Below are positions 1 to 23,379 of a DNA stretch of 23,576 nucleotides, piece by piece. The position numbers were made by a program, and so were the translations under genes. The DNA is from Macrostomum lignano (Eukaryota). Numbering within the stretch: the first letter of the stretch is position 1; every line of letters begins with the position of its first letter. The notes beneath the pieces are model-generated. The model was given only the letters and a program-made list of their open reading frames with translations, was not told the origin of the DNA and did no database searches. The stretch lies in NCBI GenBank assembly GCA_002269645.1, contig NIVC01001796.1, positions 1 to 23,576 of the forward strand, in the 5' to 3' direction.

Positions 1-168
1 AAAATTTCTACGACAGATTTCTTGAAATAAAAGGAAAACAGAGAACAAAACGAAGTTGAAAAATTTTAACACGTCATACACGCGACGATTCGCAAAAGTG
101 CTAATATAATATACAAATAATTGGATTTATTTCTGCAAAGCTGTGGCAACAATGCCTCTCAACCTGAG

Positions 169-779
169 CTACTCATCAGAGTCCGCTGCCGCCATCGCCG
201 CAGTCAAGCAGTCTTGGCTGGCTTTCCTGAATCCTTTCTCGCACAGGTCGTCAAGAGGAATTTCCAGGTGGAACTTCTTGCCGCCCTCGAATACTTCCAG
301 CGGCACGAAGGTCATCTTGTTTCTGTTGGCCTGGCTGAAGGCCAGGTGTGTCTGCAGCCGGTCGTTTAGGCTCAGATTTTGGAGGCGACCTGTGATGAAC
401 GAATTCAGTGATTTAATAAGGCTGGCTAAATTACAGCGCACCTGTGCAGGTTTCTGTACTCTTTTCATAACAGGTTTTATTGCCGATATGTAGCGTGGAT
501 AACTTTGCAAAGGGAAATATATACACAACACAGCCTGTGGATTTGAACTGTGCCTACCTGAAAGAGTTGTCGGACTCGTCCATTTGTTGAACCCGCTGTA
601 CCTGGTAGAGCAGGGGAACCAGGGCGAATATGAAAATAATTCGAGTCCACCTGGTGCGAATTTGATCGTACGGCGACAGAGGCGGCAGGAACAGCAGCTG
701 GCGCCGGGAAGACCCCGTAGCCGCCTGCTGAAGACTCAGTTTGCCCAGAAACATGGCCTTTTTCACATAAAAAATCCAT
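169..779 (-). CDS. Small spliced protein-coding gene, hypothetical, tentatively PIG-H-like (exon segments 558-754 or 558-779, 442-502, 169-389)
   Basis: Last exon 169-389 is strongly GC3-biased (GRLQNLSLNDRLQTHLAF...AAADSDE*). Canonical GT-AG candidate introns at 503-557 (55 nt) and 390-441 (52 nt). The GC3-rich frame from ATG 754 encodes a hydrophobic helix (RIIFIFALVPLLY). AATAAA on the minus strand at about 125-130. Exact isoform unresolved; the PIG-H resemblance is by-eye only. Confidence 0.6.
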
Positions 780-3095: not shown

Positions 3096-3613
3096 ACATA
3101 TAGCCTAATTAAACCCAAATTGAAAATGGTAATTAAAAAAACTGAAATCTCGTTCTTGACTTATAAAAATTTTTCTGTTCAAAATCATAAAATCAGACCA
3201 CGAATACAATAGAGTGGATTAGAGAATGTCTCCCAGCACAAAAGACACAGATATGGCAGTAATTCAGCAATATGAATCAGAACCAACAGAAAGCAAAGTT
3301 AAAAACATTGATACAAATTTTAAAAAAGAGCTGAGCACATTTTTATGCCAGCGGGTTGTTCGCTAAAACATTGCAAATAAACAGCATATGGCTGAATTGG
3401 ATTGGAAAGCAAAACTACCGCAGGGGTGTCCAATGACTTGTTGAATTTCAGGAAAAAGACAATCCTTGATTAATAAATTATATCAATACCACATGAGATA
3501 CTAGAATAGCTAGATGGGCCACTCCGACTCGGCACATTTGCGTGTCAGCTACTTTCAGTTCAGTAGTAAGTTAAACTGAAGAATTTTAATGTTTTTTAAA
3601 GCCAAGGCTCATT

Positions 3614-3764
3614 TATTGGCTCTTTCCCCCCCTCAAGCTTAAAACCTCCAACGGCGCCTTTCCACACAACCCCCCTCCGCCCCCCGCCCCAGTTTTTATT
3701 GCCTTTCTCGGAATTCCAGCCTAAAGCTGCCATGTACATTTCAGTGGACTGGCTAATGTACATT
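3614..3764 (-). promoter_or_regulatory. Putative cis-regulatory module upstream of RRP15 (CCAAT box, GC boxes GGGGCGGGG, paired AATGTACA)
   Basis: Same ordered motif blocks as 1096-1265; contains Sp/KLF-type GGGGCGGGG and NF-Y-type AGCCAATA on the minus strand. Confidence 0.4.
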
Positions 3765-4043
3765 ATTGCTAAACCAATTAGCAAGTTGTTTACGACTGCA
3801 AGCTTGGGCTTCTGAACTTATCAAAGTTCATTTCAGCAGCCTTTATTCTTATAAAATAGCTTATGTATTCTTTTTTGCTACTGAACTGAAAGTAGACAGC
3901 TGTTTTACTAAGGATATATGCCTGAATGGCCTATCTACGAGACTAGTTATTTTAGTATCTGTGACCAATACTAACAATATGATTATTAATCAATTCCAAC
4001 ATTCAGAAACATGATGAAAAATCTAGCTATGCTTTTACAGTCG

Positions 4044-4706
4044 TCACTTCTCCTTCTTAGCCCTGGCAGGCCTGCCGCTCGGCTTGCCGCTTGCAGCCTC
4101 CGCGCGCCCCTGCTGAGCGGTCAGCTTGGGCAGGTAGTGGTCGCACACCTGCTTGCACACGATGGAGCCCAGCATGAAGGCGGACACGAAGCAGGCGTAC
4201 CAGGCTGTGCCAGTCACCTGCTTGCTGAACCAGTCGGACCACATGCCGCTAGCCAGGGCGGCGCAGGCGCAGGTGAACATGAAGGTGCCGCTGGTGGCGT
4301 GGTACAGCTTCATGTCAGCGGGCCGGACTCCGCCCAGCTTCAGCCGGGTGCACACGCCGCCGATGCACTGCAGCAGCAGGTAGATGTTGCACAGGGCGCC
4401 AATCCAAGAGTGCCAGCTGGTCAGGTGCGGCCGGCCCTTCTCCTCCTTGCTGCGCCACACGAAGTAGCCGCCGGTTAAGGAGGCGCCCAGGGCCGCCCAG
4501 TTCAGCAGGGCGTGCGCGGTGGTCTGGCGTTCCCGGTTGCCAGCGAACAAAGACGACTGGCGGTTGAAGGACAGCACGCCTTGGAACAGCAGCAGGCCGA
4601 AGGCGACCGACATGAGGGTTGGGTGCCAGCTGAATAGGCTGCTGCCCGGCTGGGCGATGTACACCAGGAAGCCCACCAGCAGGATGCACAGGAAGTGCGA
4701 CACCAT
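4044..4706 (-). CDS. CYB561D2: Cytochrome b561 domain-containing protein, CYB561D2/101F6-like transmembrane ascorbate-dependent reductase (220 aa, intronless from ATG 4706)
   Basis: PGSSLFSWHPTLMS, AH, LTSWHSWIG and KLYHATSG supply the four heme-ligating His in family-typical context; multiple hydrophobic helices; GCCATG start context. The track ORF extension to 5099 is minisatellite. Confidence 0.92.
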   Translation of the reverse strand: MVSHFLCILLVGFLVYIAQPGSSLFSWHPTLMSVAFGLLLFQGVLSFNRQSSLFAGNRERQTTAHALLNWAALGASLTGGYFVWRSKEEKGRPHLTSWHSWIGALCNIYLLLQCIGGVCTRLKLGGVRPADMKLYHATSGTFMFTCACAALASGMWSDWFSKQVTGTAWYACFVSAFMLGSIVCKQVCDHYLPKLTAQQGRAEAASGKPSGRPARAKKEK

Positions 4707-4755
4707 GGCTGCGGGATGGGTGGGGCAGATTGGCTGCGGTTGAAGGCTGCGCGGG

Positions 4756-5620
4756 CAACTGAGGATCTGGGAGGCTGGCTCAGCAACTGACACTCTGGGA
4801 GGCTGGCCCAGCAACTGACACTCTGGAGGCTGGCCCAGCAACTGACACTCTGGGAGGATGGCCCAGCAACTGAGAATCTGAGGGCTGGCCCAGCAACTGA
4901 GAATCTGGGAGGCTGGCCCTGCAACTGACACTCTGGGAGGTTGGCCCAGCAACTGACACTCTGGGAGGCTGGCCCAGCAACTGACACTCTGGGAGGCTGG
5001 CCCTGCAAGTGGGGATCTGGGAGGCTGGCCCTGCAAGTGGGGATCTGGGAGGCTGGCCCTGCAACTGGGGATCTGGGAGGCTGGCCCAGCAACTGACACT
5101 CTGGGAGGCTGGCCCTACAACTGGGGATCTGGGAGGCTGGCCCTGCAACTGACACTCTGGGAGGCTGGCCCTGCAAGTGGGGATCTGGGAGGCTGGCCCT
5201 GCAAGTGGGGATCTGGGAGGCTGGCCCAGCAACTGAGGATCTGGGAGGCTGGCCCAGCAACTGAGGATCTGGGAGGCTGGCCCAGCAACTGAGGATCTGG
5301 GAGGCTGGCCCAGCAACTGACGCTCTGGGAGGCTGGCCCAGCAACCGAGGATCTGGGAGGCTGGCCCAGCAACTGACACTTTGGGAGGCTGGCTCAGCAA
5401 CTGACACTTTGGGAGGCTGGCTCAGCAACTGACACTCTGGGAGACTGGCCCAGCAACTGAGGATCTAGAAGGCTAGCCCAGCCCAGCAACTGAGGATCTG
5501 GGAGGCTGGCCCTGCAACTGACACTTTGGGAGGCTGGCCCAGCAACTGAGGATCTAGAAGGCTAGCCCAGCCCAGCAACTGAGGATCTGGGAGGCTGGCC
5601 TGGCAACTGGGAAACTGGTA
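4756..5620. repeat. 28-bp minisatellite, about 31 units (GGCTGGCCCAGCAACTGACACTCTGGGA and variants)
   Basis: Read directly; translations repeat every 28 aa (3 units); interspersed variant classes end ...GACACTCT, ...GAGGATCT or ...GGGGATCT. Confidence 0.95.
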
Positions 5621-6604: not shown

Positions 6605-6975
6605 GGGGAATTCCCCGGTTAGGTAGGTGGGCTTGGAATTCCTTGGCATGGGGAATTCCCCGGTTAGGTAGGTGGGCCTGGAATTCCTTGGCATGGGGAA
6701 TTCCCCGGTTAGGTAGGTGGGCCTGGAATTCCTTGGCATGGGGAATTCCCCGGTTAGGTAGGTGGGCTTGGAATTCCTTGGCATGGGGAATTCCCCGGTT
6801 AGGTAGGTGGGCCTGGAATTCCTTGGCATGGGGAATTCCCCGCTTAGGTAGGTGGGCCTCGAATTCCTTGGCATGGGGAATTCCCCAGTTAGGTAGGTGG
6901 GCTTGGAATTCCCCGGTTCGATAGGCGGGCTAGGAATTCCTTGGCATGGGGAATTCCCCGGTTAGGTAGGTAGGC
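6605..6975. repeat. 45-bp minisatellite, about 8 units (GGGGAATTCCCCGGTTAGGTAGGTGGGCCTGGAATTCCTTGGCAT)
   Basis: Read directly; 12-bp palindrome GGGGAATTCCCC at 6605, 6650, 6695, 6740, 6785, 6830, 6875 and 6948; two EcoRI sites per unit; no unique spacers. Confidence 0.95.
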
Positions 6976-7508: not shown

Positions 7509-10500
7509 CTGCGGTGGAAATGCGGAGATTCTCAAGGACTGAGGCAGCTGATGAGACAGATTCTCAAGGACTGAGGCAGCGGAGAGGCAGATTCTCAAGG
7601 ACTGAGGCAGCGGAGAGGCAGATTCTCAAGGACTGAGGCAGCGGAGAGGCAGATTCTCAAGGACTGAGGCAGCGGAGAGGCAGATTCTCAAGGACTGAGG
7701 CAGCGGAGAGGCAGATTCTCAGGACTGAGGCAGCGGAGAGGCAGATTCTCAAGGACTGAGGCAGCGGAGAGGCAGATTCTCAAGGACTGAGGCAGCGGAG
7801 AGGCAGATTCTCAAGACTGAGGCAGCGGAGAGGCAGATTCTCAAGGACTGAGGCAGCGGAGAGGCAGATTCTCAAGGACTGAGGCAGCGGAGAGGCAGAT
7901 TCTCAAGGACTGAGGCAGCGGAGAGGCAGATTCTCAAGGACTGAGGCAGCGGAGAGGCAGATTCTCAAGGACTGAGGCAGCGGAGAGGCAGATTCTCAAG
8001 GACTGAGGCAGCGGAGAGGCAGATTCTCAAGGACTGAGGCAGCGGAGAGGCAGATTCTCAAGACTGAGGCAGCGGAGAGGCAGATTCTCAAGGACTGAGG
8101 CAGCGGAGAGGCAGATTCTCAAGGACTGAGGCAGCGGAGAGGCAGATTCTCAAGGACTGAGGCAGCGGAGAGGCAGATTCTCAAGGACTGAGGCAGCGGA
8201 GAGGCAGATTCTCAAGACTGAGGCAGCGGAGAGGCAGATTCTCAAGGACTGAGGCAGCGGAGAGGCAGATTCTCAAGGACTGAGGCAGCGGAGAGGCAGA
8301 TTCTCAAGGACTGAGGCAGCGGAGAGGCAGATTCTCAAGGACTGAGGCAGCGGAGAGGCAGATTCTCAAGGACTGAGGCAGCGGAGAGGCAGATTCTCAA
8401 GGACTGAGGCAGCGGAGAGGCAGATTCTCAAGGACTGAGGCAGCGGAGAGGCAGATTCTCAAGGACTGAGGCAGCGGAGAGGCAGATTCTCAAGGACTGA
8501 GGCAGCGGAGAGGCAGATTCTCAAGGACTGAGGCAGCGGAGAGGCAGATTCTCAAGGACTGAGGCAGCGGAGAGGCAGATTCTCAAGGACTGAGGCAGCG
8601 GAGAGGCAGATTCTCAAGGACTGAGGCAGCGGAGAGGCAGATTCTCAAGGACTGAGGCAGCGGAGAGGCAGATTCTCAAGGACTGAGGCAGTGGAGAGGC
8701 AGATTCTGAGGCTGCGGAGGCAGATTCTCAAGGACTGAGGCAGTGGAGAGGCATATTCTCAAGGACTGAGGCAGCGGAGAGGCAGATTCTGAGGCAGCAA
8801 ACATAAAAAGCTCACTTCTTGTCAATCTTCCGCCATCCCAATGCAATGCAAGACCTGTCGCGCAGGCTCGGCTGGGAAGCCGCCTGTAAAAAATAAAAAA
8901 TATGAAATTGCAGAGACAGACTAAACATTGGCATGACAAAAAAACTCAAAGAAATCGCAGTTACGAACCTCCCCTGTGGAGTCTTGCCGGTCAAGACGCT
9001 GACGATTTGGTTCCTCTTCAACTCCAACTCTGCGATGCAAGTGAATATGAATTATGAGCGCGCAATGGTTAACAGTCATTGAGCATGGTACACACAGTAT
9101 GCTCTTATGTACACTCAAATTCAGGACAGCTTGTGGAGGTGTTGACAGTCAGTTCTATTTGTACGCCCGTATTTGAAAACAAAGCAGAATGGGGTGTACC
9201 TGTGTACACCCTAACCTAGAACACGTTGAGTTGGCGATTTGCACCCCATAGCTAACTGACAGTTAAACTTAGGCGTCTTCTGAGCCTCTAAAAGTGTTCA
9301 AAGTGTGCTCAAGACGGCAGAAATCAATGATCTTAAATAGGTCGAGAGGTTCTGAACACAGAGCAGATGTTCTTGGATGGCTGATCTTTTAGTCCCATGA
9401 TCCTTGACCCCAGTGTACAGATGTATAAGTGTACAGATGTATAAGTGTACAGATGTATAAGTGTACAGATGTATAAGTGTACAGATGTATAAGTGTACAG
9501 ATGTATAAGTGTACAGATGTATAAGTGTACAGATGTATAATTGTACATATGTATAAGTGTACAGATGTATAAGTGTACAGATGTATAAGTGTACAGATGT
9601 TATAAGTGTACAGATGTTATAATTGTACAGATGTATAAGTGTACAGATGTATAAGTGTACAGATGTATAAGTGTACAGATGTTATAAGTGTACAGATGTA
9701 TAAGTGTACATATGTATAAGTGTACAGATGTATAATTGTACAGATTTTATGAGTGTACAGATGTATAAGTGTACAGGTGTATAAGTGTACAGATGTATAA
9801 GTGTACAGATGTTATAAGTGTACAGATGTATAAGTGTACATATGTATAAGTGTACAGATGTATAATTGTACAGATTTTATGAGTGTACAGATGTATAAGT
9901 GTACAGGTGTACAAGTGTAAAGATGTACAAGTGAACAAGTGTACAGGTGTACAAGTGTACAAGGTTTTTTCCAACGCCACCTGCAGGAAGTGACCGAGGG
10001 ACACGAGACTGCAAGCAGAAGGACCCCCCTGGCCGCAGGCTTACTCAATGTGCATCCACTGCAGCATCTGGGTGGCGAGGCCGCCGCACACCAGCACGGT
10101 GATCATGACCAGGATGAGAGTGGTAGAGAAGATGATCTTCCTGGCATCCGATGAGGTGTTCCGAATGGCCAGGGCGAACGCCATGGCGCCCCGCAGGCCG
10201 GAGAAGGCCAGCACGTGCATCCGGGACAGCCCGATGGCGCAGCCGCTGCGCCTGCGGCCAATATTGGCCAGGCCGCACAGGGGGTAGACGCACAGCACCC
10301 TGCCGATGATCATAGCCAGGAATCCCGCCACAATGAACACCGGGTCCCACAGGTGCGAGCTGTAGGTGAACACGCTGACCCCGATGTACACAAAGGTGAA
10401 ATTTTCAGCTAGAAAATTCAACAGGCCAAAGAATGACATTGTGGTGGCCTTGGACTCGTCAGACAGGTTGTTATAGGTGTAGTGCGCCTGGCAGATGCCG

Positions 10501-13500
10501 CAGAACAGCACGGCCACAATGCCGGTGCTCTTCACCGCCTCGGCCGCCAGGAAGGTGCTGTAGCTCATCAGCACGAACAGGCTGGTCTCCAGCAGCGGGT
10601 GCTCGCGGACCTGGGCAATGGGTGAGCCAGGCTTTGAATTTGAAATAGTAGAAACCCAGATAGTGGCCTCTGGAACCTGCTCATAATCAACTTTTCGGAT
10701 CCCGCATTTTTAAATCCCACAGGGATCAGTAGCCTGATTCTCCCGAAATCCTCACAGTGGGATCAGTAGCCTTATTCTCCCGAAATCCCTACAGTGGGAT
10801 CAGTAGCCTGATTCTCCCGAAATCCTCACAGTGGAATCAGTAGCCTGATTCTCCCGAAATCCTCACAGTGGGATCAGTAGCCTGATTCTCCCGAAATCCT
10901 CACAGTGGGATCAGTAGCCTGATTCTCCCGAAATCCTCACAGTGGGATCAGTAGCATGATTCTCACGAAATCCTCACAGTGGGATCAGTAGCATGATTCT
11001 CCCGAAATTCCTACAGTGGTATCAGTAGCATGATTCTCCCGAAATCCTCACAGTGGGATCAGTAGCCTGATTCTCCCGAAATCCTCACAGTGGGATCAGT
11101 AGCATGATTCTCCCGAAATTCCTACAGTGGGATCAGTAGCCTGATTCTCCCGAATTCCTCACAGTGGGATCAGTAGCCTGATTCTCCCGAAATCCTCACA
11201 GTGGGATCAGTAGCCTGATTCTCCCGAAATCCTCACAGTGGGATCAGTAGCCTGATTCTCCCGAAATCCTCACAGTGGGATCAGTAGCAGGATTCTCCCG
11301 AAATCCTCACAGTGGGATCAGTAGCATGATTCTCCCGAAATTCCTACAGTGGGATCAGTAGCCTGATTCTCCCGAATTCCTCACAGTGGGATCAGTAGCC
11401 TGATTCTCCCGAAATCCTCACAGTGGGATTAGTAGCCTGATTCTCCCGAAATCCTCACAGTGGGATCAGTAGCATGATTCTCTTGAAATCCCCACAGTGG
11501 AATCAGTAGCATGATTCTCCCGAAATCCCCACAGTGGAATCAGTAGCATTGTTCTCCCAAATCCTCAGTGGGATCAGTGATGACTCTTAAAGAAATCCCA
11601 CAGTGGGATCGGAAATGACTCTTATAGAAATCCCACAGTGGGATCAGTAGCCTTATTCTCCCGAAATCCTCACAGTGGGATCAGTAGCCTGATTCTCCCG
11701 AAATCCTACAGTGGGATCAGAGATGACTCTTCTCTTTCCAAAACGCTCACCCGAGACTCACCTGCGTGAACTTGGTGATGAGGGCGGTGAGGCAGCCCAG
11801 CAGGCAGCCGATGCCGATGGCGCCAAGGAACACCCCGGCGAAGCTGCCGATGGCCTTCAGCACGGAGATGGCGGCGGTCTCTCCGGCCGCCGCGGCCGAA
11901 CCGTAGGTCTCGATAGACTCGGACAGCACTATGGCAACGGCGTCGTTAAGGACGCTTTCGCCGAATACGAGAGCGTAGAGATCGGGCTCGACGCGGAGGT
12001 CGCTGAATATTGCCAGGACGGTGACTGGAAGGATGCGATGAAAACAAAGGCTTGCCTGACTTGACAGCACATCAGATGCCGATGGCAAAGAAGCGGTTTT
12101 AAAAATTCTCACCCGGATCGGTGGCCGATATGAAGGCGCCGAACAGGAGGCACTCGCTGAGGCTGACGATCGAGGCGAGCCTGGCGCTGGCCCGGCTGAT
12201 GCCGAATGTCACGCCGCTGCGGGAGTTCAACGGCGATTTGGGAGAACAGTTGGGATCTGGGATGAGGCAGACTCTATGGTAGGGGTTTGCAGAAGAGAGA
12301 TGGGAATGGGATAAGAGAAGGGATTAGAGAAAAGATAAATGAGGGAGAGAAGAGAGGAGGGAGAAGGGAAAAGAGAGCAGACAGAGGAGAGGGGAGAAAG
12401 AGAGCTTAGAAGAGACATAAACCTTGAGCAGGCCGGGCCGGATTGCTATTGTGAACTTTCAAAAGTCAGGAGGGTCGAAGTTTTCCAACCCCTGCTCTAT
12501 GGGGATCAGGGATGAGGGAGTCTATATGGGGATCAGGGATGAGGGTGTCTATATAGGGATCAGGAATGAGGGTTTCTATATGGGGATCAGGGATGATGGT
12601 GTCTATATGGGGATCAGGGATGATGGTGTCTATATGGGGATCAGGGATGAGGGAGTGTATATGGGGATCAGGGATGAGGAAGTGTATATGGGGATCAGGG
12701 ATGAGGGAGTGCATATGGGGATCAGGGATGAGGGAGTCTATATGGGGATCAGGAATGATGGTGTCTATATGGGGATCAGGGATGAGGGAGTGTATATGGG
12801 GATCAGGGATGAGGGAGTGCATATGGGGATCAGGGATGAGGGAGTCTATATGGGGATCAGGGATGAGGGAGTCTATATGGGGATCAGGGATGAGGGTGTC
12901 TATATGGGGATCAGGAATGATGGTGTCTATATGGGGATCAGGGATGATGGTGTCTATGTGGGGATCAGGAATGATGGTGTCTATATGGGGATCAGGGATG
13001 AGGGAGTGCATATGGGGATCAGGGATGAGGGAGTCTATATGGGGATCAGGGATGAGGGAGTGTATATGGGGATCAGGGATGAGGGAGTGCATATGGGGAT
13101 CAGGGATGAGGGAGTCTATATGGGGATCAGGGATGAGGGAGTGCATATTGGGATTAGGGATGAGGGAGTCTATATGGGTATCAGGGATGATGGTGTCTAT
13201 ATGGGGATCAGGAATGAGGGAGTATTGCAAATCTGGAGTCAATTTATGAAATCAAAGATGCAGTTCAAAAGTGACAGATCAGATGAAATCCAAGAAACAT
13301 GGGTTGCTGAACTCACCCGATAACAAAGCACGATATGGTGGTGCCAAGAAATGCCAGCATCAGAATCGAGCCAATATTGCGAAAGAAGTGTTTCTGGAAC
13401 AATAATGTGGGCTTTAAATTTATTGCTTGTAAAAGCTGTAAGCATAATCTGATCAATGACGTTTTGAAAGCCTCATAGTGGGATTGGGGTCATGCGATGG

Positions 13501-16500
13501 GATTTAAGGGACCTGCAAGCGTCGTGTCATGAAGGCACATTGGAAACATCATGAAGGCACATTGGGGACGTCATGAGGGCACATTGGAAACATCATGAAG
13601 GCACATTGGGGACGTCATGAAGGCACATTGGAAACATCATGAAGGCACATTGGGGACGTCATGAAGGCACATTGGAAACATCATGAAGGCACATTGGAAA
13701 CATCATGAAGGCACATTGGGGACGTCATGAAGGGACATTGGGAACGCCATGGAGATGGGGATGCATGGAGATTGGGGACGCCATCCTCACCCTCTTCATG
13801 CTGAAGCCGGCAAAGAAGATGATGGGTGGCAGTATGAAGTTGAAAAACACTTCGGGATTAAACGTCGCCTTCTCGTCTAAAATCGGGGCGTTGATATCGT
13901 TGCCATAGAGACGCCGCTTATAATCGTACTCGTAGATTTGCGATTCGTTCAGAACGGACATGTTGACGAGGACTTTCTCCGGCGGCAGCTTGTTAGACTG
14001 CTCGGGTGAGTCCTCGATAGAGATCATTGTGATGCTAGGCTGGTAGCTGGGAGAGCCGTAGCGAATGATAACGCCAACTATGAGACCTGGGTTGGAGATA
14101 GGACAGAGTGTACTTTAGTTTTGAATCATTAGCCATGATGGCTGGGTTCATTTTTTCGGAGTTTTTGGAGTTTTTTTCGGGTTCATTTTTGCATCCAGGT
14201 GCCAATTGCTAGGTGGCACCTGGATGCACCTGGATGGGGTTCAAAATTCACTTTTCATTTTTAATTTAATGCTAACTTTGTAAGTCTATCTGAGACTTTT
14301 TGTTAAGTAATTGTTAGTGATTCTCAATATTAATATAAACTATCCTATGCCATTAAGTTTGTATACAGTCCACCACTGTCATTAATTGAATTAGTAGAAA
14401 CAGAAATGATAAATTTCCATGTAATTCACGGCCTGCGAGCTCAGAGTGAATTTTATCTAGCATGGACAAGTGGAGAAAATTTGCAGCAAAAAAGTACCAG
14501 CTCTGAATTTGAATACCAGAAATTCATCTCCAAACTTTCTCGGCTGGCAACTTCAAGTACACACATGAGTCAATGAACAGTTATTTAACCTTTTTTTACA
14601 TATCTATAGTGAACATCCACTGCTTAAAAACCAACTGCTACGGCATGAAATATTGTGGGTTTAAGGAAAATCGATTCTTAATAGCAACGAGCATAGACAC
14701 CTGTTTGAGTTTTCACTTTACATACATAAATTTTGACCAAATAAGACCAATTTAGCAGTAAAGATTGGTTATGAGTACCAAAGTCTGGCAGGAACAAGTT
14801 TTGAAACTCGTTACTTTCAAATTATTAACGGTAGCAAAATACGGCTAGCCGAAACGCCAGATAAAAAATCCACCAGAAGATCTTCGAGTAAGGAACTGGA
14901 ACTGGTGCAGATAAAAGCGGACAATCCAACAAGCCGTCAGAGTTAACAAGCTAAGAACTGTCAATGAATGTCAAAAAAGATTCGCACCAGCGATACGCCC
15001 AATCGTGTGAACTCGACAGTCTTTTCTTTGATAGTCTATATATGCAAGTCTGATTTAAGATGCCATCTCCAATTAACAAAAACTCATAAGCCGACAGTAA
15101 CCGAATTCGAAGAGCGCAACTCCAGTAACAAGTAAGTTTCGTCGACAATAATTTCCATTCTTCCTTTTTAAAAATAAAACAAATCAATATTCTACTCTCT
15201 ACTCAATAAGTGGATAGTAGCACAGTAAGCGCAATATAACTATTTTGCATTCCAATTACTACGAATATTCACAGAATGAAGGCCGTCATTGCTCTTCTGT
15301 GCCTCGTGGCCGTGGCCTCCGCTGCATACACCCCCGCCCAGCGTGAGGAGGTCCTGGATGACCTCGTCCACGAGATTGTGCCCTTCCTGTCTGTGGACTG
15401 GAACTGCGTCAAGAACGCCGGCATCTCCAGCTCTATGTGCATCCTGAAGAACCTCATCAGCTGCGGCGTGGCCATCAAGCCGCCGCTCATCGCTGTCTGC
15501 CTGGTTGCCAGCTGCGGCGGAGACGCTGCCAAGCTGGCGTACTGCATCAAGCTGTGAAGCTGGCAATGCCCCTTACATTGCTTTAAAAATAGTCGACTAA
15601 ATATATATTAATTCGACAAGTACAGCTTATATTGCAGCTTTCGTCTTAGGCTTCTTTAATTATGATAACAATCGAAAATTCATGATGACAGACTAATAGC
15701 ATACAAATATCTCAATCTGAGCTACAATTTAGCTCGTAGTAAACCCTGAAAATGTTCAAATTTTCGGAGCTCATTTACGATGACTGATTAGTGCTCAATA
15801 AGTTCGCGAAAAAAACACTTTTAAAATATTCTGGCACTAATTTTTTTCCGCATATACCCCCATCTAATGAGACTTCTCAACGTAGTTTCCAGACAGATTG
15901 ATGCATTTCTTCATCTGATGAAACCAATGCTGTAAAACAGTCCCTCAATTTCACCTGAGCTCTGCTCTCAGCTCCTCTTCGAGCTCCTTGCGAGAGTCAA
16001 AGTGCTTTCCTTTGAGATTCTTCTTGATATCTTCGAGAAGAGGAAGAAGTCCGCTAAGAAGTCTTTGGCCGCTCCTGACATAACAAAATGGGAAGAGGTG
16101 AAAGCAATGAACAAGAACACGGTCATGCCAAGGGACCAAACAGGACGGCAAACAGAGAACAGATACTGCACCATCTGCAACAGAGAGTTCAAGACTCACA
16201 CGGGACTGAAGATACACAACACCAGGATGCATCGAGAACAGAGACAAGAGGAGAAGAAGTTCCCAAGATGCGGAGACATCCTAAACAACAAGGCCAGCGA
16301 GACGAACCACCTTTAGATCTGTAAAGGCGCCCTGAAAGGGACATGCCCGTACTGTCTCCAGCCCAGGAGCGCCAGCAACATGGCGAGGCACATACGCAAC
16401 TGTGCGCAGTACAATGACCTACAAACAGGGTACCAACAAGAAGAAGAGGACCAAGACGCCTACACGACGGACAGGCCTGAACCAACCGACGCACCGAGAA

Positions 16501-19500
16501 GAGCGAAGATTGCTTGCCCGGGCTGCAGCAAGAGCATCTCGAAGACAAATATAGCAAGACACCGGAAAGTCTGCACCGCGGAACCGACTCAAAGCCAATG
16601 AGTGGCATGCCTCATAGGAGGTCGAATTGTCATATAAGGACAAGGACAAGGCCGCTCCTGAGAGAGTAACTTCAGCACCTGCGGTGAGCAGACACCTGAG
16701 TACCAGTTACCAGTCACTGTGGCACCTTCCTCGAATAGGATGGGTAGCAGAATGCCACACCGCATGCTGCCAAGACCTTGCCGACACTCGTAGGAATTTG
16801 ACAGGGGCATCCTCTTCGAAGGCGATCCCCTGCCTGCTCTGGAATTTTGTCTCTGAGAAGTACACCCATGTTTCATAACCTGTCAGGATGTTGTCCATCA
16901 ATTTCGAAGCCCCCTTGTCGAATTTGTTATGGATGAAGGTTGCGAACTCAATATGAACTTGCATCTGGGTTGGGTTCAGGTGATGGTTACCCAGCACCCG
17001 GATACTTTCACTCGTCGATCTTAGCCACTGCCGCCTCCTGACCAACTTGTATACCATTGTATAGGATGAGGCTTCATCATTCAGGGCTTGTTGAAGCGTC
17101 TGCACGCATTCCGAGGCAAACTGGCCAAGTCGAAACTGGACAAGAATTGCGACTCCTCTGTCACACATGGTCAATCAAGTGCAGTAAAGATTATGAGGTT
17201 GCATCACTCTTTCAGCCACTGCATCGGAGAATCTCAGTCAAAGATGCTGAAAATCTACATGAAAGGTTTTAACATCGAATGAAATAAACAAACTTCAGTA
17301 TATTTGCATGAAAAGGATATTCATTTTTCGCGAACTTATTAAGCAGATCTTGTACAAGTAATTTAGGACTGTATGAAATGTATAATGACGGAGTATGTAA
17401 AAAAACGGAATGTATTCGTATTTCTCGGCATATCTGTATATATCTTTATGTCTTTTATGGAGCTGGTTTCAATTTTAACTCGATTTTTACCTAGCTATAA
17501 GAAACAATCATGTACTATTTAGAACAAACTCCTAGGGCATGACATATTAAGGGTTTAGTTTAAATAGATTCCAAATAACAATGAGCATAGCAACCTATTT
17601 TACTTTAAACTTTAGATGCATAAAAAACATATTGTTTTTGGGGCCTAACTTAGAGCTAGGGGAAGCTGTATAGCAGCCAGAATGTATGCAAAAAGTGAGC
17701 ACCAGTGCAGCTGCTCTTGAAACTCCCCATCTCTGTCGCTGATATGGGGTAGGCACACCAAGCTTTCCAGAAAAAGAAAATAATTCTCTGATAAGTTTCA
17801 AATGAGAATAATTAATGAGTTTCAAATAAATACACCAAATATACCAAATACCAATACCATTAATACCAAAAAGATATTGTTCAAAAATAATGCAACTTGG
17901 ATAATACCAATAAAGAAAGTACTATTAATCCAATATACTTTAGATAATTTTAAGTACATACTAGAAAATTCTTAAGTAAGAATAACATCTTTTTGGAGTA
18001 TAGTTAATTAGTAAATCTATAACTATTAATCTACTAAACTTATTTTTTAATCTATAGTCATATTTATTATTATAGTTTTCAATTTATAAACCAAAACCAA
18101 TTTTAAGTTGTTAAAATTATTAAATTAAAATAAATAATTTTTTTCTGAACAAAACTGCACCAAGTGCCAACATGAGAACAATGATAGGCCTTATCATTGG
18201 GCTTATCATAGGAGCCTATATGTTCCCAATTTTAATGATATTAGTATAGATAGTTAGGTCTCTTATTTTAGCCAATTAGAATAACCACTATTGTAGATAG
18301 TGTTTAATTTAGATTGGCTCTTAGCAATATAGGCCATATTGCAGATGTAATATAAGCTAGAAAATTCTAGCATATAAATGCTTCAGCTAGTATATATCTA
18401 GATATATAGATACAAGCATATAAATAAAAGAAATAGAATTCCAGTTGTTTCACCCCATAAACTATTTTGGCCATAGACATTTCACCCCTAGACCATTTTG
18501 CCCATAAGTCCATTTTGCCCATAAACCAGTTTGGCTATAAGCATTTTGGCCAAAATGGTAATTATATAATTTAGAGATATAGCCATACATTTATCTTTCT
18601 TTTCTTTTTTCAATGCTAATTTTTTTAATGTGTAAAAAAACTATGATCTGAATTGTTGCTACAACAATTGTGTTATTGCAATTTTGTTCATTATGATTGT
18701 GAACATATATGCGCAACTGCTAGTCGATCTGGCCACCATAAATTGTGGTTGACCAGGGGTAAGTCGCAAAAATTCCCAGTCTAAAGAATACAGATGTAGC
18801 ACTAATTATATGACGAGGCATTTAGCCCTTATAAGACAGTCATGGTTACTCCTGCCATTTACTCAAAATTGCGTTAGGGTTTCTTTCACAGGTAAGTTGC
18901 ATTTTTGGTCAAAAAGTAAGTCGCATGGCCAGTGTAAATCAGGGGGGTTGCGCATGTATGATTGTGAATTATTACAAGGTAAAGCCAGAAATACTAAAAG
19001 AATAAGATTTGTCACCAAAATTTAAAATCAAAGCACAGAGTTAACAAACTGTAAAGTTTAGAAATGGTCCATGGCCAAAATGGGCTATGGAAGAAACAGT
19101 CTGTGGGCAAAATGGTGTAGGGGCAAAATGTCCATAGCCAAAATGGTTTATGGGCAAAACAACCAGTTACCCAAGAAATAAATTCTTAACTATATTTGTT
19201 CAAGCTTATGGCGTAGCAAATAGAACCATAAGAAGAATATGATATCATTGTCTAAAGTATATTAAATAATTATTTGTTATAAAAAAAGTAATTTTTTAAT
19301 TATAATAATAAGTTAGCTTTTTAAATAAAATAGTATTTTTATAGTTCCTAGTGAAGAATACAAGGGGTGATCAAAAAGTTCTGCAAGTGACCTCACAACT
19401 CAGTTCTACAGCAGCCAAGGCATCTAATCAGTGTCATATTCCCTTAAAGTACTTTCCATCAATATCTATACACCGTCGCATGCGTGTGCACCATGTCTGA

Positions 19501-22500
19501 AAGCAGTCATGGTACTCTGAAGTTGGTATACCCTGTAGAGCTGAATGTACCACTTGGGCAAGGTCTTGCATGCATGAAAATGGCCTCCCAGAAATGACGG
19601 ATTTGATCCTCAGGACCAGCCAAAAGTCGCATGGTGCTAGGTCTGGAGAGTAGGGTGGATGGGGCAGCAGCCGGACCCCCTGCTGCTCTAGGCACGCCAT
19701 GGTTGAGGCCGCTCTGTGCAGTGCCGCATTGTCATGGTGCAGCAGGAGTTGTGGTCCATGCCTGGTTTGCGCACGTTCCTGCCACTCCTGCAGCACGCCT
19801 GGCAGAGCAGTGTCTACGTAGTACCTGGCAGTCACTGTGGCACCTGCTGGAAGGATGTTCACTAATACAACACCCTGAGAGTTGAAAAAATGGTGAATAT
19901 CCACTTCTGACTGCGGAATCCAGTCTTTAGCACCTTAGGCCTTGGCTTATCTTCTGCCAGCCAGACCATGTTGGACTGCTTATCTTTCATGGTAAAAGAA
20001 GGAGATCCAACATTTGTCTCCTGTGATGACATCCAACAGTCGTCGTGGGCCGTGGGCCTCAAACATTTGCACCCACAAGTGACAGATGTGCACCCTCTCT
20101 GCTTGCTGCTCCGGAGTGAGAAGATGGGGTACCCACCAAGCGTAGGTCTTTGTGTGGCCCAGTCACTCATGCATGATGTTATGAGCACTTCCATAGCTGA
20201 CACCAAGCTCATAGGCAATGAATCTCAGCATAATGCTCCAATCCTCACGAATTATTGCATTGGCATGGGCCACAACATCTTTGGTCACAGATGTCTAGGG
20301 TCTGCCAGACCTTGGTTCATTGTTGAAGCTGTCCCAGCCTTCCAAGAAATGGCGCAGCCAGTGGGCAACCATGTCAAATGATGGAGCAGAGTCAGCTAAA
20401 ACATTCACCAGATTGGTATGAATCTCAGTCACTTTGCAACCAAGTTGCATGCACATAAAGATATAGAAGCGAACACTATCTTTTGATGTTTCCATCAGCT
20501 ACTAAAAACACATGGAAAATATATGGCTGTGAAATTTTACTAGAGCACATTTGGAAGCCAAAAATGCATATAAATATAGCAAACAGATATAGCCGCATAT
20601 GTGTAAGTTTTTGGCTTTTGCCAATTCTATAACTAAAAGCTATAACAAAAGGTTGCAGAACTTTTTGATCACCCCTCGTATATTCCAATCAAAAATAAAC
20701 TTTACTATTTTGTTCTAGGCCTACTAATTATTTCTATTTTTTTTAAATGGTACAGAACAGGTTTTATTTTGCAGAAATTATTTGCTTCCTTTATTGCTTG
20801 TTGCATTGTTTTTATGCTTGTTAATCATACAATATTATTAGTATACAATTCATTAGAACACTTAATTGGTATACTTTACTAGTCTACACTTTACTAGATA
20901 GCTAAATACTTTCTGGAATATATGGAATACCAGACTCCAGAAGGTTACAAGTACGTCGGAAAATTCCAGCATACAAATGACCCCTTTCAAAGTTGGGGTA
21001 CAAATTTTGGCATACAAACAAAGTCTTGCCATTTTTGGCATACAAATTTTGGCATACAAACAAAGTCTTACCATTTTTGGTGGACAAATTTTTGCCTACA
21101 AACTTATGCTATGTGACTTGTGCCTGAAACTTTTAACATAAATTATGCAATTTACATAAAAAAAATTCAAGAACTATTTCAAAATGAGTTTAAATTTTTT
21201 TTTATTTCTATTTCTAGATGACTGAAAGAAGACAACTGAGTAATATTGATTAATTTGGATGTAACTATTGTCTTATGCTTTTTTTAACCTAAATGACCTT
21301 TTTTAGAAGAAATTTTGGCATACATATTAGGGGAATTGTTACCCTTTTTGGCGTACACTGCTATATATTTAGATGAGCTAGGATTCTTGTTCTGGTATAC
21401 ACTACTATATGATCTAGACCTTGGATAGAATATAGGTATATGTTATTAACATAGTCTAGTATAGAAAAATAGGGCATCTAGTGCATTAGGGGTTGGGTCT
21501 ACTAGTTTTATAAAGTTTAGTTGATGATTAATAAGGACATGGTTTAAGCAGCTTCATAGGAATTTTTAAAAAGCCACACTTAGAGACATGGCACTTGTCT
21601 ATAATGCAGAAACCTATAGACACAGCAGCCATGTCTCTGATAGTGACTAGATCCATACTTAGAGATACAAGTATCTATAAGTATTTATATTATAAACATG
21701 GCACCATGTCTATAAGTATGGACCTAGTCACTAGGATGCCCATTAAAATGGCCACACGCGGAATGGCCACCAAAATGGCCATATAAAACAAAAAGGGTTG
21801 CAGATCAACTTTGTTTTATTTGTTATGTTAAGGAAGCTTTGTTATGTTAATTGTTTTTAGCTTTGGTACTTGCATCAGTATCAAAATGCAAAAAAGTGAA
21901 TGCATTGAGATATTATGCAATTTATGTAGGCCGAAAAGGATCCGAAAGCGAAGATGAAATTGTATTTTATGGAGCGACCAGCAGTTATGCAAATTTTTAA
22001 AATATGCTAAAATAGTTATGTAAGAAAGTTAAAAAATGCTAAAATGGTTCACAAAGTAAAATTTTCAACTAAGAAATCAACTAAATATAAAGAATATAAA
22101 GAAATCAACTAATTTCTTTCTTGTTGTAAAATGATAAGCTCCTCTCTCTGCAACCATCCACCTTTATTCTTAATTGACCAGTGCCTCGGCCCCCATGTAC
22201 GCCACCCCCCCCCCCGATTGTTCATCATTTATCTTTCTACTTAAATGTACATTCAACCCTCCACTTCTCTTATCTCTTATTATTACAAATTATTATATTG
22301 TGTGGCAGTTTTGTCGTGTGGCCGTTTTGACAGTGTGGCCGTTTTGTTGTATGGCCGTTCTACGTGTGGCCATTTTGATGGCACCCTAGTCACTATTGAA
22401 GACATAGCCACAATGTCAATGAAACTTGCATGGCAGACATGTTATTAGGCCTAATATTAAATGGGTTCACACTTAAAAACACAGTGGGTGGCCATGTTAT

Positions 22501-23379
22501 TAAAATGGGTTCACATGTAAAGACACGGTGGGTAGCTGTGTCTCTAATATTAGAGCTTATAGGCATGGCTGCCATGCTATGTATATAATCATTGATTGGA
22601 TGAAAAGATTGATCAATTGAAAAGTTAGAGTTTTTTTAAATGAAATTTAATTTAATTTTTAAGAGTAACACAAAATCATGGCAATCGTCTTATCCACTAC
22701 ACTAAGCCTCTGCCACTATTTGATTGTGAGAGAGCCCTTAGAACGCATTTTATATTGATTATAGCCGTGCCTATAACAGTATAAGCTCAAATATTATAGA
22801 CATGGCCACCATATACTTCATTTAAAAAGTAACAGGAACTACAGAATGGCAACTCATAGGCCTAGCTTGAGTCATAGGCCTTTGTCAGAATATATCAGTA
22901 GACCTACAATCTGTAGAAAAAAAATAGGTATAGTTCTAGTTTACTGCGTTAAATTATTTCGCCCTCTATTCAAGGAATCAAGGGTAGGCGGTTTGGAATA
23001 TAACAAAGTAAACTAGAACTATGTCAAAAAATATCTTATAGCTACTTGACAAATGGGCACACAGAGGGCTAGCCTGCCATACATTGTGACTATGCCCCTA
23101 TGGTTTTAATATGGCTAGGAGAAAACAAGAGGTTGTGATCACATTTACATACAAAGAATTTTATAGTTTCTTACCATATAAAATAGCCAGACCAGTTTCA
23201 TGAATAAACCGAAATCGTCGATGCTTAAAAAGCCATACAGTAAGGATAGTGACAATCAGTAAACCCAGATACAAAAGAAGAGTCATGCTATCTGAAACAT
23301 GATTAATTTGAACTCTTGATTCCTGAGAGGTTTCAATGCTTTTATCTATGCTTGTCTCTTTAGACGACTTAGAAGACAT
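7202..23379 (-). CDS. SLC9A6: Endosomal Na+/H+ exchanger (SLC9A6/7/9 clade), 9 coding exons, 1947 nt, 648 aa
   Basis: Exons 23175-23379, 13791-14086, 13317-13393, 12113-12216, 11762-12024, 10045-10610, 8969-9029, 8816-8883 and 7202-7508. All introns are GT-AG with matching phases. Motifs [91 protein letters not shown] and KPLLT. Probably co-orthologous to SLC9A6/7/9, so the symbol is approximate. Confidence 0.95.
7527..8797. repeat. 31-bp minisatellite, about 40 near-identical units (GATTCTCAAGGACTGAGGCAGCGGAGAGGCA), filling NHE intron 8
   Basis: Read directly; a few 30-bp single-deletion variants; terminal units degenerate. Confidence 0.97.
8816..8883 (-). CDS. NHE exon 8 ([22 protein letters not shown])
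   Basis: Acceptor TTTTTTTACAG, donor AA|GTGAGC; W..D motif precedes KPLLT as in NHE6/7/9. Confidence 0.8.
8969..9029 (-). CDS. NHE exon 7 ([20 protein letters not shown])
   Basis: Acceptor TTGCATCGCAG, donor GAG|GTTCGT (weak); continues the HI(E/R)VGV motif. Confidence 0.8.
9413..9960. repeat. 16-bp minisatellite, about 34 units (GTGTACAGATGTATAA), NHE intron 6
   Basis: Read directly; 130-bp (8-unit) higher-order duplication starting at 9681 and 9811. Confidence 0.95.
10045..10610 (-). CDS. NHE exon 6 ([17 protein letters not shown]...QWMHI)
   Basis: Acceptor CATTGCCCAG, donor GA|GTAAGC; core transmembrane segments. Confidence 0.95.
10717..11720. repeat. 37-bp minisatellite, about 27 units (CAGTGGGATCAGTAGCCTGATTCTCCCGAAATCCTCA), NHE intron 5
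   Basis: Read directly; internal inverted repeat ATCAG/CTGAT; a variant block recurs at 11101 and 11323 (222 bp = 6 units). Confidence 0.95.
11762..12024 (-). CDS. NHE exon 5 ([10 protein letters not shown]...GESVLNDAV...TKFTQ)
   Basis: Acceptor ATCCTTCCAG, donor CAG|GTGAGT. Confidence 0.95.
12113..12216 (-). CDS. NHE exon 4 ([34 protein letters not shown])
   Basis: Acceptor CTCCCGCAG, donor G|GTGAGA; not in the ORF track. Confidence 0.92.
12290..12420. repeat. GA-rich polypurine tract (polypyrimidine on the transcribed strand), NHE intron 3
   Basis: Low-complexity A/G run read directly. Confidence 0.8.
12498..13222. repeat. 27-bp minisatellite, about 27 units (ATGGGGATCAGGGATGAGGGAGTCTAT), NHE intron 3
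   Basis: Read directly; gives (MGIRDEGVY)n-type ORFs; three G-runs per unit. Confidence 0.95.
13317..13393 (-). CDS. NHE exon 3 ([26 protein letters not shown])
   Basis: Acceptor TTATTGTTCCAG, donor GG|GTGAGT; not in the ORF track. Confidence 0.93.
13527..13746. repeat. 22-bp minisatellite, 10 units of two alternating variants (TCATGAAGGCACATTGG-AAACA / -GGACG), NHE intron 2
   Basis: Order ABABABAAB plus one degenerate unit. Confidence 0.92.
13791..14086 (-). CDS. NHE exon 2 ([11 protein letters not shown]...[24 protein letters not shown])
   Basis: Acceptor TCTCCAACCCAG, donor AGG|GTGAGG; phase 1 joins exon 1 to give ILYGLIVG. Confidence 0.95.
14190..14228. repeat. Perfect 15-bp inverted repeat with a 9-nt loop
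   Basis: TGCATCCAGGTGCCA-ATTGCTAGG-TGGCACCTGGATGCA. Confidence 0.9.
15036..15274 (+). promoter_or_regulatory. Putative TATA-like box, non-coding first exon and 5'-UTR intron of the nested gene
   Basis: CTATATAT at 15036-15043; consensus donor GTAAGT at 15132; acceptor ATTCACAG ending at 15274, one base before the ATG context (143-nt intron). Confidence 0.5.
15276..15557 (+). CDS. Secreted six-cysteine prepropeptide (93 aa), nested antisense in NHE intron 1; function unknown
   Basis: Signal peptide [16 protein letters not shown], acidic spacer, hydrophobic cationic C-terminal part with 6 Cys; strong GC3 bias inside AT-rich sequence; splice acceptor just upstream. Confidence 0.88.
   Translation: MKAVIALLCLVAVASAAYTPAQREEVLDDLVHEIVPFLSVDWNCVKNAGISSSMCILKNLISCGVAIKPPLIAVCLVASCGGDAAKLAYCIKL
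15792..17354 (-). mobile_element. Decayed mariner element A, interrupted by a foreign insert
   Basis: TIR cores TGCTCAATAAGTTCGCGAAAAA (15792) and TTTTTCGCGAACTTATTAAGCA (17324), TA at 17353-54; left outer end diverged. Minus-strand remnants: HTH region, ILTGYETW (TGDETW with D>Y), LYDNSTSY (HDNA-like), [37 protein letters not shown]; frameshifts and deletions. Confidence 0.85.
16052..16601 (+). mobile_element. Fragment encoding a C-terminal multi-zinc-finger region, probably from a non-LTR retrotransposon (pseudogenised)
   Basis: One frame gives CTIC...HNTRMH (C2H2), degenerate FPRC...NHL*IC, CPYC...RHIRNC and CPGC...RHRKVC (CCHC) with one in-frame TAG at 16314-16316. The retrotransposon origin is recalled from family architecture, not searched. 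Confidence 0.65.
18442..19172. mobile_element. Foldback/MITE-like non-autonomous element with long imperfect TIRs built of CATTTTGCCC-type subrepeats
   Basis: 18442-18510 aligns by eye with the reverse complement of about 19098-19170; no coding capacity. Confidence 0.65.
18704..18956. mobile_element. 253-bp non-autonomous element with short TIRs and a 12-bp flanking direct repeat
   Basis: TATGATTGTGAA at 18692-18703 and 18957-18968; termini CATATATGCGCAAC and GTTGCGCATG; three internal GTAAGT(C/T)GCA motifs. Confidence 0.6.
19361..20678 (-). mobile_element. Full-length (1318 bp) mariner element B, DD34D, transposase pseudogene
   Basis: 26-bp TIRs CAAGGGGTGATCAAAAAGTTCTGCAA and TTGCAGAACTTTTTGATCACCCCTCG (1 mismatch); TA on both sides (19359-60, 20679-80). 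Transposase 20495->19434 has WVPHLL, ITGD, HHDNA, 34 aa to [13 protein letters not shown] and [10 protein letters not shown], with at least two internal stops and two frameshifts. Confidence 0.95.
20996..21112. repeat. Short 42-bp tandem repeat (about 2.5 copies) built from 14-bp GGCATACAAA subunits
   Basis: GGCATACAAATTTTGGCATACAAACAAAGTCTT(G/A)CCATTTTT read directly. Confidence 0.8.
21560..22575. mobile_element. Second foldback/MITE-like element with (AAAAT)GGCCAC subrepeats and nested imperfect inverted blocks
   Basis: About 21724-21775 pairs with 22345-22395; 21624-21650 with about 22385-22411; 21579-21593 with 22533-22547. Outer ends not defined. Confidence 0.55.
23175..23379 (-). CDS. 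NHE exon 1 (MSSKSS...[39 protein letters not shown])
   Basis: Family motif [12 protein letters not shown]; donor G|GTAAGA; AT-rich codons unlike the downstream exons. A further upstream exon cannot be excluded. Confidence 0.9.

Follow-up and report, generated by a model that had tools for sequence, protein, structure and literature searches.

A nested antisense gene of Macrostomum lignano that probably encodes a secreted six-cysteine helical protein outside described families

In the genome of the flatworm Macrostomum lignano, contig NIVC01001796.1 (NCBI GenBank assembly GCA_002269645.1) carries a short GC-rich island in an AT-rich intron, which raises the question of whether the island is a gene and, if so, what kind of protein it makes. 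The stretch analyzed, here called the window, comprises positions 1 to 23,576 of the forward strand (23,576 nucleotides, nt), and the island holds a plus-strand open reading frame (ORF) that is antisense to the gene around it. The initial annotation, made from the letters of the sequence, had taken this ORF for a nested gene encoding an unrecognised secreted prepropeptide with six cysteines. The nested gene holds: the ORF is intact, lies in the first coding intron of its host and has homologues to E=7e-19, and we consider it very probable that the gene truly belongs to a genuine family of secreted proteins. "Unrecognised" was wrong in one respect, as the sequence itself is already known: the exact protein is present in UniRef, and its paralogues are annotated as hypothetical, one of them being named as a saposin. 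The novelty lies in seeing these proteins as one coherent family, whose acidic-plus-cationic, six-Cys architecture is conserved and fits none of the described families or solved folds.

The gene and its parts are as follows.

15276-15557, plus strand: complete coding sequence (CDS), 93 codons and TGA, intronless
15276-15323, plus strand: signal peptide, 16 amino acids (aa), predicted AXA-type cleavage ASA/AY
15324-15386, plus strand: acidic N-terminal segment, 21 aa, 5 acidic residues, net charge -4; pro-piece or helix 1
15387-15554, plus strand: hydrophobic cationic six-Cys domain, 56 aa, net charge +3, grand average of hydropathy (GRAVY) 0.99
15037-15044, plus strand: TATA-like box TATATATG, putative core promoter, perfect match to TATAWAWR
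15066-15131, plus strand: putative non-coding leader exon, 66 nt, 41% GC, ending at a GTAAGT donor
15132-15274, plus strand: putative intron of the 5' untranslated region (UTR), 143 nt, GTAAGT...CACAG, 30% GC
15600-15605, plus strand: AATATA, a poly(A)-signal-like hexamer, the only such hexamer within 180 nt past the stop codon

The signal peptide was called by inspection: an n-region is followed by a hydrophobic core, positions -3 and -1 are taken by small residues, and the same layout recurs in all relatives. The Cys-rich part starts with LSVDWNC and ends with AYCIKL. Leaving out the cysteine of the signal peptide, the spacing is C-X10-C-X7-C-X11-C-X4-C-X9-C, and the six Cys occupy positions 28, 39, 47, 59, 64 and 74 of the mature chain, a span of 47 residues. 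The spacing, the five acidic residues of the spacer and the hydrophobic 56-aa part with its charge of +3 are all as first described. The same is true of the GC-rich island: GC content at third codon positions (GC3) is ~0.84 and that of the CDS as a whole is 0.62, against 0.37 GC in the flanking 0.4-0.6 kb on each side and 0.39 in the host intron around the gene.

High GC3 had also been read as a sign of high expression, and this was rejected. The core exons of the host gene have a GC3 of 0.84-0.87, equal to that of the peptide gene, and the value is therefore a matter of normal coding style and not of expression level.

The TATA-like box and the signals of the intron at 15132-15274 are both present as sequence, and on these signals the promoter, leader exon and UTR intron are plausible. 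The 5' end of the leader exon (15066) is a guess, set ~30 nt after the TATA box; transcription starting at or downstream of ~15063 excludes the upstream ATG at 15060. The CACAG of the putative intron ends two bases before the ATG of the CDS, and both donor and acceptor agree with the cis-splicing motifs reported for M. lignano, GT[G/A]AG and CAG (PMC8629364). Judged from its sequence, the acceptor at 15274 could alternatively be unused or trans-spliced. Canonical AATAAA was not found within 180 nt of the stop codon.

The gene sits antisense within the following intron, which also holds remnants of transposons.

14087-23174, minus strand: first coding intron of the host NHE6/7/9-type Na+/H+ exchanger gene, 9,088 nt, phase 1
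15792-17345, no strand assigned: mariner-like element, 22-nt terminal inverted repeats, 95% complementary
19434-20218, strand not given: second DDE_3 transposase remnant, same host intron

Host exons were mapped with a human NHE6 sequence, and the junctions were then read directly. The first coding exon runs on the minus strand from the ATG at 23379 to 23175, with in-frame stops ahead of it and gtaaga after it, and the next exon begins at 14086 (minus strand) after cccag. A 177-aa exon of the host matches the human NHE6 and NHE9 structures in the Protein Data Bank (PDB) at E=3e-56 and 5e-52.

Relatives of the window protein were sought by an exhaustive HMMER (phmmer) scan of 1.84 billion representative proteins, with these results.

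P0002: 46% identity, E=7e-19, Macrostomum lignano, hypothetical/uncharacterised
P0003: 46% identity, E=2e-10, M. lignano, N-terminal part of a fused 979-aa model
P0005: 45% identity, E=7e-9, M. lignano, hypothetical/uncharacterised
P0006: 31% identity, E=3e-4, 949-bp AT-rich contig from JGI metagenome 3300030741

A 406-aa repeat protein, P0004, matched at 7 short stretches and was treated as spurious, and a word-indexed protein search gave no match beyond the window protein itself. Searching with a profile brought in three more M. lignano proteins (P0008, P0009 and P0011), along with P0010, which is present in Logan assemblies of two sequencing runs; this search recovered 8 family proteins at E values of 1e-24 to 1e-38, with the window protein at E=4.6e-37. 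The M. lignano relatives, to which the window protein is 41-48% identical, include BOX15_Mlig029556g2/g3, Mlig001791g1/g4, Mlig018888g1, Mlig013012g1 and the N-terminal part of UniRef100_A0A1I8GVX6. The paralogues whose existence had been left as a matter for checking were thus found, with all six Cys invariant.

Conservation extends beyond the cysteines. Throughout the family alignments the six Cys are accompanied by one invariant Pro (P36) and one invariant Thr (T19), and among Macrostomum members the invariant positions ahead of the Cys-rich part are Y18, T19, Q22, E25, V26, D29, E33 and P36. The conserved layout is a signal peptide, an acidic segment of the form AYT.EQ..EV, the invariant Pro and six Cys in register; the C-terminal C-I-K-[LIF] is common to the window protein and the M. 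lignano paralogues, and the CDS is intronless at all paralogue loci. The window protein differs from these paralogues in a C3-C4 loop that is two residues shorter (X11 against X13) and free of N-glycosylation sequons, which some paralogues carry there.

This conservation bears directly on the possibility that the ORF is non-functional, being a chance frame, a decaying duplicate or transposon cargo. Such a view would draw on the position of the gene, a singleton in an intron adjoining a mariner-like element that begins 235 nt past the stop codon, on the lack of a canonical AATAAA and of the promoter motif of the array paralogues described below, and on an exact-product look-up, in which the window protein was not among the called genes of any contig on record. 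However, at 41-48% identity to the paralogues the frame is still intact and retains the signal peptide, all six Cys and the invariant Pro, which argues against a dead copy, as one that old would carry stops or frameshifts, and GC3 of the coding type is maintained. Transposon cargo was rejected, because the gene lies outside the inverted repeats of the mariner-like element and outside the DDE remnant. A non-functional ORF is therefore regarded as extremely improbable.

The genomic arrangement of the relatives was also examined. On M. lignano contig NIVC01000671 a tandem array holds at least 4 complete copies and one fragment at a spacing of ~3.7-4.3 kb, and the arrangement is repeated on a second M. 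lignano contig; P0002 is an intergenic singleton. The array paralogues are thus intergenic tandem copies, whereas the window gene is a nested singleton. The paralogue models with BOX15_Mlig tags derive from a genome-guided assembly of RNA sequencing (RNA-seq) reads (PMC5730564), so that the family is transcribed, a result that says nothing direct on the window copy.

Upstream of the M. lignano paralogues and of the Logan copy there is a promoter module, made up of CGTCA(C/G)CTGCAG and, 25-35 nt further on, a box that reads CATAAAT or CATATAAAA; the boxes of both forms lie ~95 nt upstream of the paralogue ATGs. On the array contig the module stands ~95-140 nt ahead of the start codons at 5118, 8820 and 2260 (minus strand), and at two further loci it is found ~95-125 nt upstream of 548 and ~90-135 nt upstream of the ATG at ~10058. 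It may be a family-specific regulatory element. The CGTCA(C/G)CTGCAG motif was not found upstream of the window gene.

Outside the named M. lignano models, the metagenome contig (Ga0265459_10766186) carries two diverged family copies head to head, at 157-450 (minus strand) and 482-775 (plus strand), 31 nt apart; they are 59% identical, have eight Cys each, and the minus-strand copy has no ATG where its signal peptide begins. Scans of metagenome contigs with P0006 and with a Macrostomum-only alignment found no relatives. P0003 (UniRef100_A0A1I8GVX6) is named "C-type lectin domain-containing"; its family part (~103-182) lacks the last two Cys, and its SVDWNC motif is identical to that of the window protein. 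Most likely this gene model has fused another paralogue with genes downstream of it. Taken together, the sequences at hand are best read as a lineage-restricted family that appears to be centered on Macrostomum.

It remained to be seen whether the family is a described one in disguise. The absence of a match to defensins, macins or saposin-like proteins, noted at the outset, was borne out: no signature, Pfam or PDB match to any of them was obtained. In the Pfam scan, neither the window protein nor any of the 8 family members rose above noise (ASH2L WH, COE1 DBD and similar, E>0.04), and a single-sequence search of the PDB with the window protein gave no match. SecB, returned by the PDB profile search at E=0.023, was judged spurious.

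AlphaFold models were built from 8-sequence alignments, one for the window protein minus its signal peptide and one for P0011. Both are all-helical bar a two-residue bridge, with a predicted local distance difference test score (pLDDT) of 71 and 73, and both place 5 helices in the mature chain and a short bridge that links the beginning of the Cys domain to its end. In the model of the window protein one helix covers mature residues 4-18 at pLDDT 53-55, and four helices make up the Cys domain at pLDDT 72-81. These models are consistent with the helical product foreseen in the initial annotation. Foldseek found no neighbor for either model in the PDB (best E values 2.8 and 4.4, TM<=0.39), and against the PDB and viral structures together nothing fell below E=1.8. 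As the models are of moderate quality, the absent fold match is suggestive and not conclusive. Defensins and macins were absent from the PDB sequence and fold matches, and their beta-sheet CS-alpha-beta fold is not that of the helical models.

The saposins needed a closer look, since P0011 is named "Saposin B-type domain-containing protein" in UniRef. A highly divergent saposin-like protein (SAPLIP) of the group of NK-lysin, amoebapores and caenopores, with shifted cysteines, would account for that name, for the similar size after the signal peptide (~77-79 aa) and for an all-helical, hydrophobic protein with six Cys, in which the nested order of the disulfides is probably alike. Six reference saposin-like sequences were validated by their matches to SapB_1/SapB_2 (1e-5 to 1e-15) before being aligned, and served as controls. 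With the SapB_1, SapB_2 and Saposin hidden Markov models (HMMs), none of the 8 family members matched at E<=10, whereas the controls did, and hhalign of the family profile against the saposin alignment gave a probability of 0.14% over 1 aligned column. The cysteine pattern differs as well: saposins follow C-x2-C...C-x10-C...C-x5-C over ~74 residues (C5, C8, C36, C47, C72 and C78 in the reference alignment), while the window protein has X10/X7/X11/X4/X9 over 47, and saposin helix 1 carries C1 and C2 while the first helix of the window protein has no Cys. Foldseek against the PDB, which is rich in saposin folds, returned none of them, with models of pLDDT 71-73. Membership of the saposins was rejected on the HMM, profile-profile and Cys-pattern tests, the Foldseek result being suggestive of the same with models of this quality, and a divergent SAPLIP is held to be very unlikely. 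Thus neither profile-profile comparison nor AlphaFold with Foldseek matched the family to a characterised one, and no described family or solved structure fits it.

The succession of signal peptide, acidic segment and cationic Cys-rich part, described originally for the window protein, recurs in every relative and is charge-compensated. In 7/7 members examined the N-terminal part has a charge of -3 to -6 and the Cys part of +1 to +6, and the values roughly compensate each other, as in the pairs -6/+6, -4/+4, -4/+3 (the window protein) and -3/+2; GRAVY of the Cys domain is 0.56-0.99 across the family. The further step of calling the product a prepropeptide is not supported. A dibasic site (KK/KR/RK/RR) is absent from 7/7 members, and the junctions of the two segments are never basic (VPF/LSVD, VPV/ISID, DPY/ISVN, the slash marking the junction). 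Invariant positions are about as frequent in the acidic segment as elsewhere in the protein, and both AlphaFold models give the segment as a helix, at low confidence. With no basic site at or near the junction in any member and a conserved, helical acidic segment, cleavage is unproven, and on the simplest reading the segment may form the first helix of a mature chain of 77 residues.

The positions of the mature Cys add up to nearly constant sums, C1+C6=102, C2+C5=103 and C3+C4=106, the result that bridges nested within a helical hairpin would give. We infer from this the pairs C1-C6, C2-C5 and C3-C4 as probable bridges. The two metagenome members have an extra Cys pair at 32 and 71 (C1+4 and C6-4; sum 103), which would look like an added rung of the ladder.

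The pairwise ratio of nonsynonymous to synonymous substitution rates (dN/dS) between paralogues is 0.3-1.1, with the Cys invariant. Strong codon bias deflates dS, so that these ratios are inflated; fast change between fixed cysteines is still indicated. Fast evolution on a fixed scaffold combined with tandem arrays is, by analogy, a pattern common in defense, toxin and reproductive proteins.

One such analogy leads to a protein of reproduction or communication, that is a component of seminal fluid or prostate gland or a water-borne pheromone, acting via a receptor of the partner and not on membranes. The family is duplicated in tandem, confined to one lineage and high in dN/dS on a scaffold of fixed Cys, as reproductive proteins typically are, and small helical pheromones with three disulfides are known from Aplysia (attractin) and from Euplotes. 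Against this, so hydrophobic a protein (GRAVY up to 0.99) would be an unusual diffusible signal, and the presence of two members on an AT-rich metagenome contig makes the family older than one mating system. Reproduction-related genes of Macrostomum are reported to evolve rapidly (PMC7336406), and this would favor such a role; yet the four paralogue gene identifiers are absent from the supplementary tables of PMC7336406, PMC5816591 and PMC5730564. A literature search did not find the paralogue identifiers in any paper, nor anything relevant on Macrostomum together with saposin, antimicrobial peptide, cysteine-rich or single-cell. On balance a reproductive role seems unlikely.

Hydrophobicity and copy number can also be understood if the protein has neither lytic nor signaling activity, and serves a secretion (mucus, rhabdite, eggshell) as a structural or carrier component or is a carrier of hydrophobic ligands like the small helical lipid-binding proteins of tapeworms. 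The very hydrophobic domain in a chain of near-neutral overall charge, the multi-copy arrays, which suggest demand for a bulk product, and the N-glycosylation sequons in the C3-C4 loop of some paralogues would suit this role. However, the fast amino-acid divergence of the paralogues is less expected of a bulk structural protein, the proteins have no repeats or low-complexity composition of the matrix-protein type, and the Pfam and PDB profile searches disclosed no similarity to any known carrier. We regard a structural or carrier role as rather improbable.

The explanation preferred here, tentatively and at somewhat less than even chances when taken as a whole with its membrane or lipid mechanism, is that of a functional small gene, independently transcribed, encoding a secreted, all-helical protein held by disulfides. 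We infer for it a secretion cut site, a disulfide map, a masking role, a membrane or lipid target and a biological role, as follows. Signal peptidase would cut after Ala16 and release a 77-residue chain, the first ~20 residues of which would form an acidic amphipathic helix, and the last 56 a helical hairpin, strongly hydrophobic and mildly cationic, that three nested disulfides would hold together. The acidic helix would pack on the hydrophobic cationic face, masking and neutralizing it during storage and secretion, and would either move aside at the target or be cut off by a protease other than furin. The protein would then act extracellularly on lipids or membranes, in defense or cytolysis. 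Taken alone, this membrane or lipid mechanism is doubtful, and an antimicrobial, cytolytic or pheromone function, as originally proposed, is pure conjecture.

Several points weigh against the preferred explanation. The window copy is known here from its sequence, and its exact product, as stated above, was not found among called genes. Being without the promoter module of the arrays, the gene may differ from its paralogues in regulation and possibly in role. Most Macrostomum members have a Cys domain charged at only +1 to +3, which is little for a cationic antimicrobial peptide of the classical type, and without the signal peptide the chain as a whole is neutral to acidic (0 to -3). The AlphaFold confidence is moderate, with the N-terminal helix poorly placed, and Foldseek against the PDB and viral structures gave no structural neighbor that would tie the fold to membrane activity. 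The inflation of dN/dS by codon bias belongs here as well.

The remainder of the window was inspected alongside the peptide gene. The mariner-like element contains degenerate transposase-like and C2H2-like ORFs; a transposase-like ORF lies at 16707-17174 (minus strand). In the exchanger gene, GC3 of the first coding exon (23175-23379) is only 0.24, against 0.84-0.87 in the core exons (10044-10613 and 11759-12028, minus strand), a strong gradient of codon composition inside a single NHE gene. Its introns are crowded with long minisatellites at 6605-6912, 7526-8790, 9412-9953, 10722-11720, 12498-13223 and 13526-13751, with units of 45 nt x7, 31 nt x41, 16 nt x33, 37 nt x27, 27 nt x27 and 22/44 nt; several of them give rise to long spurious ORFs on both strands, and GC skew reaches 0.73 in some. 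Downstream of the NHE gene lie two more minus-strand genes, at 1906-2760 and 4044-5609, one of them Rrp15p-like (Pfam E=4e-19) and the other with a cytochrome b561 domain (E=2e-26); the frame of the cytochrome b561-domain gene runs on into a minisatellite of 28 nt x30 at 4755-5609. The interspersed repeats at 21745-22386 and 3496-3963 are common to M. lignano contigs, at identities of ~91% for NIVC01002221, 78-82% for NIVC01000671 and NIVC01004760, and 78-92% overall. Along with the M. lignano relatives of the peptide and a GC3-rich coding style like theirs, these repeats agree with an origin of the window in M. lignano. A search with the host NHE exon was uninformative on this point: its best matches were arthropod or metagenome proteins at 59-61% identity, and no Macrostomum entry was among them.

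As it stands, the family is one more lineage-restricted, cysteine-rich secreted family, and such families are common in animal genomes. For annotation, it indicates that small nested genes in the M. lignano genome can be missed. Should the proteins be membrane-active, they would provide a new scaffold among the few helical, disulfide-stabilised, lipid-targeting effectors, which so far are essentially the saposin-like proteins, and the first candidate humoral defense peptides of M. lignano, a species that offers transgenesis and RNA interference. A bolder proposal is that the family represents the first of a new class of animal effector fold, a helical hairpin ladder with three or four nested disulfides and an attached acidic helix as safety catch, released without a furin site, a pore-forming or lipid-extracting flatworm defense protein unrelated to saposins and convergent with them; we think it quite improbable.

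Among known systems, Aplysia attractin and the Euplotes pheromones are likewise secreted, small bundles of helices that contain six Cys. Their precursors have a signal peptide, and those of Euplotes a pro segment too; the pheromones are hydrophilic, and the PDB includes them. The window protein, in contrast, is strongly hydrophobic and has no PDB sequence or fold match. With the precursors of alpha-defensins and with big defensins the family has in common the layout of signal peptide, acidic segment and cationic disulfide-rich part. It differs from defense-peptide precursors in having no basic processing site and a modest cationic charge, and its Cys part is predicted to be helical, as opposed to the beta-sheet of alpha-defensin-type precursors; the Cys spacing of the window protein is not known from any of these host-defense precursor families. 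The SAPLIPs (saposins A-D, NK-lysin, granulysin, amoebapores, caenopores) serve here as a working analogy, being likewise secreted, of ~80 residues, all-helical and hydrophobic, with three disulfides whose nesting is only probable in the window protein.

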